NCBI GenBank assembly: GCA_946965045.2
Contig: OX337233.1
Coordinates: 62,001-126,000 of the forward strand
DNA from: Epithemia pelagica
Taxonomy: Eukaryota > Protista > Bacillariophyta
Direction: 5' to 3'
Length of the DNA stretch: 64,000 nucleotides
The notes beneath the pieces are model-generated. The model was not told where the DNA came from and searched no databases. It was given only the letters and a program-made list of their open reading frames with translations. This document shows, piece after piece, positions 52,748-59,747 of this stretch. The position numbers and the translations under genes are program-made. The stretch's first letter is position 1, and every line of letters starts with the position of its first letter.

Positions 52748-52980
52748 CTACTTCTCGACTTTCTTCTTCTTGTATGGGTTGCTAACGGCTTTCTGTTGCT
52801 GTGGCTCATCCATTCTCGGAATGCTGACCTCCGGTACATCCAAAGAATTCCAGAACTGGCTGAGCTCGGTTCGCAAGCCTTGGTACTGGAAGAAGGATGG
52901 ATCAAATAAGACAGCATGCTCGTAGTGTTTCAACCGAGAAGCTTGGGTATAGTTGTAAGATCCAACCATAGCTCCAGCAC
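52748..52980 (-). pseudogene. PLD-superfamily nuclease-like gene, 3' part (after the Copia B insertion)
   Basis: SAGAMVGSYNYTQASRLKHYEHAVLF carries the GSxN and downstream Glu of the HKD motif; continues in frame from 59210 once one TSD copy is removed. Confidence 0.8.
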
Positions 52981-52986
52981 TGGTAA

Positions 52987-53441
52987 TGTTGTTTTCCTTA
53001 CTAGCGAGTAAAGAAAAGGACTCTTGTTGCAAAATTGTGTGTCTACGGTATTAGGTACTACGTCTTCGTTCCCTACTGTCATCGATGCGTTGAATCGTTG
53101 GTGGAGACGTTGTGTCACCAATTTGGGCGACGAGATGTGTCATGGACGGGCCTGCCACCGTTCGTGGGATATCGCTGCCTCTAAGTATCTTCTGATTCAC
53201 TTAGGGCCATGGACCGTTATGACAATGGTCATGGGATCCCGTCCTTAAGAACGACAATCGTTACATAGGCATTGTCGATCGTTACATAGGCATCGTCGCC
53301 TGGATCCATCGTCCGTCGTTTTTGCATTTTGTGAAAGGTGGTTCGATGATGCGTTGGGCCTAATGGAGTCATGAGGTTTGCGTCTGCGGTCCCCCAAGGT
53401 CCCCATCAGTTACATATGCCCGCATGTACAATATTCGAACA
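52987..53441 (-). repeat. 3' LTR of Copia B
   Basis: Direct repeat of 58755-59209. Confidence 0.96.
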
Positions 53442-53452
53442 CTCCCTCACGC
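53442..53452 (-). other. Polypurine tract of Copia B (GCGTGAGGGAG)
   Basis: Purine-rich run immediately 5' of the 3' LTR. Confidence 0.75.
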
Positions 53453-53467
53453 AGCGTGAAAATCTGA

Positions 53468-57473: not shown

Positions 57474-58712
57474 CTCTTCGTCAGAAGATTCTTCTTGGGC
57501 CGGTAGATCAGCTAGAGCACTCGCGAGGCGAAGGGCAGGAGTTGTACCATCATTGTTCTTCTCGGCATGAGCTAGATCATAGGCCTTCTTTTTCTCGCCG
57601 GTTAAGCCCCGTCCGTTGCACGTGTTGGAAGTGTGTTTCTTGTTGAGTGACCATTTTTCATGCCACTTACACCAATAGTACATTTTTCCGTTGACTTCTT
57701 TTACTTCTGGGCCTCCCTCATGTGGCCCAATGGTGAGCCACGATTCTTTTGCTGATTCTTTGGTCTTTTGCTCGCCCTGTTTGGATCCCTTGGTCGTGGA
57801 CAGCGGGGCTGTTTTTCCTTTCTCCATCTTCTTGACTTTGGCCTCAAGGGCAATAATCTTCTGGTCACGTTCGGACAGAGCCTGCCATTTCTTCGCTTCT
57901 ACCAGGCCTTGGTACTTGAGACGGGCCCAATCCATGAGTTGCGTCGCCGAGAGATTCGGAGAATCTCCTTCTTCGTATGCGTTCTTTCGACGACGGATCA
58001 TCTCCAAGAAGTTCTCATCACTCACAGTCTCATAAGCTTTGAAAAGGTTAGGGAGTAAGTCCAGCGTTCGTTCACCGCGGGCATGCAAACCTTGAAGAGT
58101 AGCCTTCACATAGGAGTTGAACTTGATGATGTCACCGTTGAAGTCTGCAATATGAATATGCAGATCGGACAAGCGCTGGCGAAGTACCATCACGGTCGCC
58201 TCGGTATCCACATACGCGAGGGAAATGATCACTTTGAGAAGAAGTGGACCACTGCCAACGTCGTCAATAATAAAGTCTTCGCGTCGTAGATTTACTTGCG
58301 CCTTCGCATCGTCGTTGAGCGACGCCATCAAACACATGTAGGACATGTAGGAATTCTGAGAAATCCTGTTCTGTCCGATGAAACTATCGACGTAGGTGCG
58401 AACCTGGGCGAGCGAGACGCGACCGTAGGCTTGAGTCAAGAGATGCGTAGGTGCTGGTGGCGGTGCTGGTCCAGCCGCTGGAGGAACCACAATGTGTTCG
58501 GGAATGGAAAAGGTGCTGGTCCAAGACTGTTCGACGATCCGATCTTGGAATGAGTCGAGAAATGTCTTCAGCCCTTCCGCGTGGAGATCGTAGAGATCAC
58601 CACCGTCAAAGAGTCCAGTCGTTGCCTGCTTGTAGAGCTTTGCTCCAGCTGCCGTTGCAAAGTTCACGATGTTGTTCGCGTTTGCGTTAGCGGGAGAGAT
58701 TGCGAAAGCCAT
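57471..58712 (-). CDS. gag: Copia B Gag, 413 aa
   Basis: Start MAFAISP at 58712 by homology with Copia A; the 59-aa upstream extension in the ORF track lies in the PBS and LTR. Confidence 0.92.
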   Translation of the reverse strand: MAFAISPANANANNIVNFATAAGAKLYKQATTGLFDGGDLYDLHAEGLKTFLDSFQDRIVEQSWTSTFSIPEHIVVPPAAGPAPPPAPTHLLTQAYGRVSLAQVRTYVDSFIGQNRISQNSYMSYMCLMASLNDDAKAQVNLRREDFIIDDVGSGPLLLKVIISLAYVDTEATVMVLRQRLSDLHIHIADFNGDIIKFNSYVKATLQGLHARGERTLDLLPNLFKAYETVSDENFLEMIRRRKNAYEEGDSPNLSATQLMDWARLKYQGLVEAKKWQALSERDQKIIALEAKVKKMEKGKTAPLSTTKGSKQGEQKTKESAKESWLTIGPHEGGPEVKEVNGKMYYWCKWHEKWSLNKKHTSNTCNGRGLTGEKKKAYDLAHAEKNNDGTTPALRLASALADLPAQEESSDEE

Positions 58713-58740
58713 GGCAGACGATGGACGTGTGCTGTCTAAA

Positions 58741-58754
58741 GCGCAGAGGAAGCG
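58741..58754 (-). other. Primer-binding site of Copia B (tRNAi-Met D-arm complement)
   Basis: Identical 14-mer to Copia A, abutting the 5' LTR. Confidence 0.7.
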
Positions 58755-59209
58755 TGTTGTTTTCCTTACTAGCGAGTAAAGAAAAGGACTCTTGTTGCAA
58801 AATTGTGTGTCTACGGTGTTAGGTACTACGTCTTCGTTCCCTACTGTCATCGATGCGTTGAATCGTTGGTGGAGACGTTGTGTCACCAATTTGGGCGACG
58901 AGATGTGTCATGGACGGGCCTGCCACCGTTCGTGGGATATCGCTGCCTCTAAGTATCTTCTGATTCACTTAGGGCCATGGACCGTTATGACAATGGTCAT
59001 GGGATCCCGTCCTTAAGAACGACAATTGTTACATAGGCATTGTCGATCGTTACATAGGCATCGTCGCCTGGATCCATCGTCCGTCGTTTTTGCATTTTGT
59101 GAAAGGTGGTTCGATGATGCGTTGGGCCTAATGGAGTCATGAGGTTTGCGTCTGCGGTCCCCCAAGGTCCCCATCAGTTACATATGCCCGCATGTACAAT
59201 ATTCGAACA
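58755..59209 (-). repeat. 5' LTR of Copia B
   Basis: Direct repeat of 52987-53441. Confidence 0.96.
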
Positions 59210-59747
59210 TGGTAAGGACAGCTTTGGAATGAAAAAATTCCGAATCTTTGCCGTACAACTTGAGACGGAGGCGAGCCACAGCGACGCGCCGATTTTCATA
59301 CGTGCCGACAAACTTCTGCAGACTTTCAATATTCCAGGGAGATGTTCCCAGAACAATGAATATATGTAGATTTGAAGCTGTCGGCATCGCATAATGACAG
59401 AGCTTATCTATCACAGCAAAGTCCGATAAGAATGGCGCGGATAGAAATACTTCAGAATTCGGCTCGGCCGCGGCGAGCAAATGAACGAGCGCCACAAAAG
59501 GATGGCTCTCATGGGCTATCGACTTGCCTGCTTCTGGGCCAGAGGGGTGGCGGATGCATGTATAAAGCAAGGTCGGGCGATCATTGGTAACAGCCATTTC
59601 ATCACTCTGTTTGCCGTCGCCTAGCAGCCATGATTGATCCACAAAATGGTCGTCTCCTTCCCGCACCGTTTCGCTCTGTCGTTGACGTTCGTACTCAGCG
59701 TTGTATTCCCAGTAAGAGGTGTTGAGTTCCAAATTCGAGTCATTCAT
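59210..59747 (-). pseudogene. PLD-superfamily nuclease-like gene, 5' part
   Basis: EVFLSAPFLSDFAVIDKL...HIFIVLG...FFHSKAVLT; the reconstituted ORF is 256 aa. Confidence 0.8.

Follow-up and report, generated by a model that had tools for sequence, protein, structure and literature searches.

The window analysed here is a stretch of 64,000 nucleotides of the diatom Epithemia pelagica (C6:62001-126000 of the 60.5-Mb genome in 23 contigs), and it carries on its minus strand a gene for a phospholipase D (PLD)-like protein that is split into two parts by a Ty1/Copia long terminal repeat (LTR) retrotransposon. The disrupted locus, including a chimeric open reading frame (ORF) made by the insertion, consists of the following features:

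59210..59747, minus strand: 5' part of the PLD-like gene, running through codon 179 to the first base of codon 180, with one copy of TGGTAA at 59210-59215
52987..59209, minus strand: Ty1/Copia LTR retrotransposon of 6223 bp, oriented like the gene
58755..59209, minus strand: 5' LTR (in the element's own orientation) of 455 bp, differing from the other LTR at two positions
52987..53441, minus strand: 3' LTR (in the element's own orientation) of 455 bp
52748..52986, minus strand: 3' part of the PLD-like gene, reading SAGAMVGSYNYT..NPYKKKKVEK, with the stop codon at 52748-52750 and the other copy of TGGTAA at 52981-52986
59178..59747, minus strand: chimeric 189-aa ORF made by the insertion, comprising the first 179 codons of the gene, ten codons of the LTR and a stop codon

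The reading frame of the gene starts with an ATG at 59747 and runs for 179 codons up to ..FFHSKAVLT, where the element begins. On the minus strand, 59747..59210 and 52980..52748 together yield 771 nt, corresponding to 256 aa plus a stop codon, and the joined product continues across the insertion site from ..FFHSKAVLT into SAGAMVGSYNYTQASRLKHYEHAVLF.., with SAPFLSD..VIDKL upstream. The initial annotation had proposed that removal of 52981-59209, an interval that equals the element plus one copy of the duplication, restores a 256-aa ORF, and this was confirmed by the 771-nt join, by the existence of intact 256-aa paralogues and by an empty site elsewhere (see below). The break falls between HSK and GSYN and thus splits the catalytic motif, as had also been claimed. 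The two pieces of the gene were searched separately, and an intact paralogue (L004:1501-2268) and the intact protein P0037 were used as stand-ins for the full length. The translation of the 5' part is 88-94% identical to the N-terminal part of the intact paralogues; this N-terminal fragment had no Pfam match when searched alone, and the C-terminal fragment alone gave weak matches to PLDc_2 and the NgoFVII PLD domain (E ~0.09). The chimeric ORF retains the HxK part of the motif and lacks GSxN and Glu; an identical protein (P0029) has been called in another public assembly. At two positions, the window copy has Thr135 and Leu162 where P0037 and the family have an invariant Pro and an Ile, respectively, which fits decay after the insertion. 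A 256-aa frame restored by the join is far beyond chance, and the window copy is a dead copy of a small PLD-fold family.

The two LTRs have TG..CA ends (TGTTG..GAACA) and mismatch only at 53050/58818 and 53259/59027. Two mismatches over 455 bp support the earlier statement that the insertion is recent, with LTR divergence setting only a bound on its age. TGGTAA is present on both sides of the element and is a genuine 6-bp target-site duplication, because five of the six other full-length copies whose flanks were inspected in the genome have 6-bp duplications (the sixth has 5 bp); a 5-bp duplication plus a chance base was rejected on the same grounds. Altogether, there are approximately nine full-length relatives among the genome contigs, with LTRs that are 97-100% identical. 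The internal ORF of 1032 aa has gag_pre-integrase at residues 46-92 and RVT_2 at residues 547-777 (E 3.4e-33), and the element is assigned to Copia because gag_pre-integrase precedes RVT_2. Its frames run from 58889 to 57471, where there is an in-frame TGA (57471-57473), and from 57410 to 56457, followed by a frame change (56457-56566, minus strand) into the pol ORF at 56566-53468. Young Copia elements are already known from diatoms, as are insertions of transposons into genes (PMC2806351). Elsewhere in the genome, an LTR of the same family at C13:499138-499591 has no partner LTR nearby and no target duplication, and the 20 bp that flank it on the right also occur, without a change, beside the full-length copy C8:3780886-3787102; judged from these sequences, the shared flank points to a recombination or segmental duplication between the two loci. 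A more distant Copia-like element, 77% identical to 57351-58810, lies at 1299-2776 of the window and is accompanied by LTR-like fragments near 2720-3166.

The European Nucleotide Archive (ENA) assembly ERZ21939226, which evidently derives from the same isolate, contains two relevant contigs. The first, ctg1334l, has 0 mismatches to the present genome over 20.5 kb and carries the same filled, duplicated locus. The second, ctg1176l (122 kb), is absent from the 23-contig assembly and contains the intact 256-aa gene P0037, which differs from the joined window gene at 3 of 771 nt and at two amino acids. Across the insertion site, ctg1176l reads ..CCAGCACTGGTAAGGACAGC.., with a single TGGTAA; it is devoid of the Copia element, of a neighbouring long interspersed nuclear element (LINE; only a single copy of the LINE's target duplication is present) and of the tandem repeat in which the window locus is contained. 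It matches the window at 41578-43201, 52112-52986 and 59210-60503 with 98.4-98.6% identity. On the basis of these alignments, ctg1176l probably represents the other haplotype, which would have been purged when the chromosome-level assembly was made, and the insertion would then be heterozygous. The earlier suggestion of possible heterozygosity has thereby gained an exact empty-site counterpart, which is supportive and stops short of proof.

Two observations weigh against an allelic relationship: the colinearity between ctg1176l and the window extends over only ~3.8 kb, and the flanks of ctg1176l match several other subtelomeres best, at 88-96%. Accordingly, ctg1176l could be a paralogous locus. 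It is conceivable, although we regard it as the less probable explanation, that the insertion is fixed (homozygous) and that the gene on ctg1176l belongs to a paralogous locus of very recent origin at a different chromosome end, all the more as subtelomeric arrays exchange segments. This explanation has to contend with two facts. Of the two sister contigs, ctg1334l is represented in the 23-contig assembly with 0 mismatches and ctg1176l is missing from it, a pattern that a purged haplotig would produce; and the shared core has exact empty sites for both the Copia element and the LINE, with a coding sequence differing at only 3 of 771 nt. A search for sequencing runs of the organism found four, none of them from RNA, and their reads, in the form of Logan unitigs, were also placed on 58600-60600. 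The unitigs break at every repeat boundary, and none of them bridges the junction between LTR and gene or shows the empty site. Since the unitig variants at 59264 and 59345 are common to ctg1176l and other paralogues, they cannot separate alleles from paralogues.

The assignment of the family to the PLD fold was assessed by structure prediction and by profile searches. An alignment-based AlphaFold2 (AF2) model of the intact paralogue had a predicted local distance difference test score (pLDDT) of 86.7 and a predicted template modelling score (pTM) of 0.84. The top structural matches of this model in Foldseek and VIA-align all belong to the PLD superfamily: the FAM83 DUF1669 domain (Z 15.3-15.6) and the endonuclease Nuc (1byr; Z 14.5, root-mean-square deviation 2.7, 150 of 152 residues aligned), together with NucT, Zucchini (Z 13.1), PLD3/4, vaccinia F13, SauUSI and BfiI. 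The predicted PLD fold has thus been borne out. Neighbours in the ESM Atlas are all PLDc_2; a feature search of the same resource returned viral clusters without names, as well as a single bacterial PLDc_2 cluster at 0.93, which we regard as leads only. When a profile of the family was compared to the sequences in the PDB, Nuc (E 0.028) and Zucchini (E 0.049) ranked highest, and their H, K, GSxN and E line up with those of the family; phmmer of the intact paralogue against the PDB gave chance matches only.

An alignment of 22 sequences revealed a single motif, H-[ST]-K..G-S-Y-N..E, in the family. His173, Gly186, Ser187, Tyr188, Arg195 and Glu200 are invariant and Lys175 is present in at least 90% of the sequences; Asn189 is found in most of them and is replaced by Ser or Asp in a few. 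The HxK and GSxN residues are thus largely kept in the homologues. The His and Lys, both present in the window copy, align with His94 and Lys96 of Nuc, and GSxN and Glu are in register with GSFN..E of Nuc at a spacing that is one residue shorter. Two copies of residues 45-240 were submitted to homodimer prediction. The interface score ipSAE was 0.51 compared to 0.10 for the best control. Among proteins of solved structure, the mark for a pass was attained by 21 of 30 homodimers and by none of 23 monomers; the pass of the diatom protein may go back to solved PLD dimers already known to the predictor. The runs agreed in at least 86% of the contacts, with a partner pLDDT of at least 81. The predicted interface is formed by residues 168-176, 185-189 and 193-203 and includes positions 173, 175, 187 and 200 of both chains; in the model, His173 adjoins Glu200 and His198 of the other chain, and Ser187 faces Ser187. 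The predicted two-fold dimer is, as modelled, the arrangement of the Nuc type.

The gene had been described as hidden, and this description did not hold: it is one of approximately seven near-identical close copies, all subtelomeric, and of about 20 family members in the genome, and intact copies are already contained in public protein sets. Three paralogues are intact, with 256 aa and 88-89% protein identity to the window copy; one at 94% has a TGA stop codon, one is frameshifted, two are N-terminal fragments and about twelve are more distantly related. At L029 and L030 (C6:196303-196458 and C9:3524770-3524925), only the upstream module and the first 52 codons are present before unrelated sequence begins; these are truncated relics of further PLD-like copies. 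Outside the genome, a word-index protein search returned 26 family matches, 14 of which carry a precomputed PF13091 (PLDc_2) assignment, and every match with a named organism comes from a diatom (Licmophora paradoxa from MMETSP and a Bacillariaceae metagenome-assembled genome). The family is small, since a profile search of 1.84 billion representatives gave only 137 matches at E<=1e-3. Its members have a length of ~255 aa, a conserved N-terminal extension of ~55 residues (..GDGHFVDQSW..), an AHxxHPFVA block and a basic NPYKKKK tail, which appears to resemble a nuclear targeting signal. Neither a signal peptide nor a membrane anchor was seen on reading the alignment by eye, no predictor being used. 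Among the close copies, the ratio of nonsynonymous to synonymous substitution rates (dN/dS) is 0.65-1.3, and 6 of 35 variable positions fall in columns conserved in at least 90% of the sequences, compared to 8.75 expected. The close copies thus drift almost neutrally and, as their dN/dS is near 1, the knockout of the window copy probably costs little.

In the PLD superfamily, one-motif proteins whose active site arises by dimerisation are as a rule nucleases (PMC10783504). From the model and the alignment, we judge the chances to be even that the intact members work like Nuc or Zucchini, with phosphodiester cleavage probably on nucleic acid. The term nuclease in the initial annotation is in keeping with the fold, the single-motif architecture and the predicted dimer, whereas the activity itself is what we infer from them. 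Several features weigh against this reading. The canonical Asp of HxK(x)4D is replaced by Ser or Thr in all 22 aligned sequences, which upholds the earlier observation of a Ser at this position, and five instead of six residues separate it from GSxN. The intact close paralogue reaches 23.7 bits on PLDc_2 (E 4.6e-5), compared to a gathering cut-off of 27. Among the paralogues, the Lys is lost in four (HSN in three, HTE in one), the Asn in three (GSYS in one, GSYD in two) and the Glu in one. In addition, the dN/dS near 1 among the close copies agrees with genes that have become dispensable. With regard to the missing Asp, this position is a Glu in the second motif of PLD3 (PMC10783504), and the residue is hence not strictly required in the superfamily.

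Alternatively, the family might be a non-catalytic module for binding or scaffolding on a PLD fold, similar to the DUF1669 domain of FAM83 or to the TrmB-type sugar-binding domain, in which case nothing enzymatic would have been knocked out. FAM83 is a non-catalytic PLD-like scaffold, and its chains are the top structural matches of the AF2 model; the Asp missing in all members, the paralogues with a lost Lys, Asn or Glu and the dN/dS of the close clade agree with such a role as well. Nevertheless, we consider it unlikely. Although the homologues are only 35-57% identical, they all have His173, Gly186, Ser187 and Glu200, and nearly all have Lys175; such conservation is hard to account for unless the residues serve in catalysis or in phosphate binding. 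Furthermore, there was no match to the FAM83 model PF07894 (E<=1), and the profile matches go to Nuc and Zucchini rather than to FAM83. A nuclease of the Nuc or Zucchini type remains the reading that we follow for the intact members.

The disrupted gene lies in a tandem duplication that starts within the neighbouring LINE. The surrounding features are:

48204..60503, no strand: tandem unit A of 12.3 kb, carrying the split gene and the Copia element
60503-72799, no strand, reaching ~8.8 kb past the end of the window: tandem unit B, 99.94% identical to unit A, with the same Copia element in the same place
43202..52113, plus strand: full-length non-LTR (LINE-type) retrotransposon of ~8.9 kb, with an endonuclease/exonuclease/phosphatase domain and RVT_1
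59748..60503, minus strand: upstream module, cut at 60503 by the junction of the tandem duplication

Unit A begins within the LINE and reaches as far as 756 bp ahead of the ATG, and the junction at 60503 joins the upstream region of the gene cleanly to the middle of the LINE. The LINE is inserted 635 bp past the stop codon of the gene, has a target duplication of 16-17 bp (CTATCTGGGTAATCCA) and a (TTA)n tail, and differs in its GC content (57%) from the surrounding DNA (47-49%). It is as young as the Copia element, since its empty site is kept on ctg1176l. Between unit A and unit B, there are five substitutions and one indel of 3 bp. The substitutions are all inside the Copia element, three of them in the LTRs, and none is found in ~6 kb of host DNA; by our own arithmetic, the probability of at least three of five falling in the LTRs is ~0.004. 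This clustering hints at ectopic conversion among copies of the element or at polishing noise, and faster mutation of silenced DNA suggests itself as a further option. The four LTRs of the two units have three variable positions, each of them a singleton, and the LTRs were hence still identical at the time of the duplication. Just past the 3' end of the gene, a stretch of 322 bp (52369-52690) is absent from all close paralogues. Terminal repeats were sought in it and none were found, and its classification as a repeat was rejected on the basis of its copy number, as only its own two copies and one 78-bp fragment elsewhere on C6 exist.

Given the near-identity of the units, we asked whether the duplication might be an assembly artefact, arising from two haplotypes or from repeat-induced mis-joining, with one disrupted gene copy per haplotype. 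Such an origin would account for units that differ by so few changes and for substitutions that are all located in the multi-copy Copia element, where polishing errors are likeliest. The second assembly has the same structure, yet it does not count as separate evidence for the duplication, given the 0 mismatches between ctg1334l and the present genome. We nevertheless hold an artefact to be quite unlikely, as the junction at 60503 cleanly joins two unrelated sequences and is present in both public assemblies.

The locus is situated ~115-122 kb from the telomere, in a transposon-filled array of kelch genes; C6 starts with CCCTAA repeats. The upstream module is 92-97% identical to that of other PLD-like copies and 65-92% to many subtelomeric kelch-type loci, and the 756 bp that precede the ATG are found again at 43 or more places, nearly all of them less than ~400 kb from contig ends. 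The module clusters at the ends of contigs C6, C8, C9, C10, C11, C13 and C17. About ten kelch-repeat genes were noticed at ~4300-38600 and 74900-79400 in window numbering (the latter counted past the end of the window); they share 77-83% nucleotide identity with one another and have the same upstream module as the PLD-like gene. Position 60503 was considered as the edge of a mobile PLD cassette and rejected, since the homology of the paralogues runs more than 1.5 kb further upstream past the tandem junction.

From these data, the following history is proposed. A young Copia element inserted into the motif, separating HSK from GSYN and giving rise to the 6-bp TGGTAA duplication. A full-length LINE inserted 635 bp beyond the stop codon, before or after the Copia element, and thereafter the 12.3-kb segment was duplicated in tandem, resulting in two disrupted copies of the gene. 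Intact members of the family would form a homodimer with one composite active site and cleave phosphodiester bonds via a phospho-histidine intermediate. The structure and history of the locus and the assignment to the PLD fold, taken jointly, are very probably correct. It is highly improbable that the intact members are instead lipid phosphodiesterases or transphosphatidylases, comparable to MitoPLD in its originally reported activity as a cardiolipin hydrolase or to bacterial phosphatidylserine/cardiolipin synthases: phosphatidylserine synthase (Z 12-13) and Streptomyces PLD (Z 11) are among the structural matches, but such enzymes have two motifs per chain while one-motif dimers are typically nucleases (PMC10783504), the alignment read by eye, no predictor being used, showed no membrane anchor or signal peptide, and the conserved basic C-terminal tail would suggest a nuclear location.

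The insertion into the gene is real, recent and biologically ordinary, and its significance is lowered by the redundancy of the family, by neutral drift and by the transposon-rich subtelomeric setting. The locus nonetheless records that a Copia and a LINE family were both active very recently in a diatom subtelomere, and, if ctg1176l is the other haplotype, the empty site retained in the same isolate makes it a clean, datable example of structural heterozygosity. The more useful by-product is the gene family, which combines a conserved catalytic constellation with a nuclear-looking tail and is present in about 20 copies here; it is uncharacterised and belongs to a known superfamily. If its members are nucleases, they represent a new eukaryotic branch of the Nuc/Zucchini type. 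At the far end of speculation, and with very little probability in our view, the family could be an active nuclear one-motif PLD nuclease that was recruited to the subtelomeric kelch arrays under a shared upstream module and forms with them a co-regulated system of rapid turnover, e.g. in genome defence or self/non-self recognition. If this were true, transposon insertions such as that of the Copia element would be part of a conflict rather than noise.

When compared to known systems, the window element resembles the diatom Ty1/Copia elements of the CoDi groups in its TG..CA LTR ends and near-identical LTR pair and in being young, multi-copy and inserted in or near genes (PMC2806351). It differs from them in its consistent 6-bp target duplication. 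On the side of the protein, the bacterial defence PLD-like nucleases DpdK and DrmC are similar at the level of weak motif matches (E 8e-5 for DrmC and 3e-4 to 2e-2 for DpdK), and all are one-motif proteins; the matches reach 18-20 bits compared to a curated cut-off of 100, and the diatom locus has no defence-system context. The DUF1669/SACK1 domain of FAM83 is the best structural match (Z 15.3-15.6) and likewise a one-domain eukaryotic PLD-like module, but the diatom family has no PF07894 match and keeps the His (invariant), Lys, GSxN and Glu. Zucchini/PLD6 (MitoPLD) shares the eukaryotic one-motif PLD fold (Z 13.1, profile E 0.049) and dimerises, as is predicted for the diatom protein. In Zucchini, a mitochondrial membrane anchor is present at the N terminus and there is an insertion resembling a zinc finger, whereas no membrane anchor was seen by eye in the diatom alignment; the diatom family is not known to have a link to small-RNA pathways. 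In comparison with Nuc (the Salmonella plasmid endonuclease, 1byr) and NucT, the diatom family is eukaryotic, has the N-terminal extension of ~55 residues and the basic C-terminal tail, lacks a signal peptide as judged by eye, carries Ser/Thr for Asp and one residue fewer before GSxN, and is only 12% identical; what it has in common with both of them is the single PLD domain, the catalytic residues in register and the predicted two-fold dimer.

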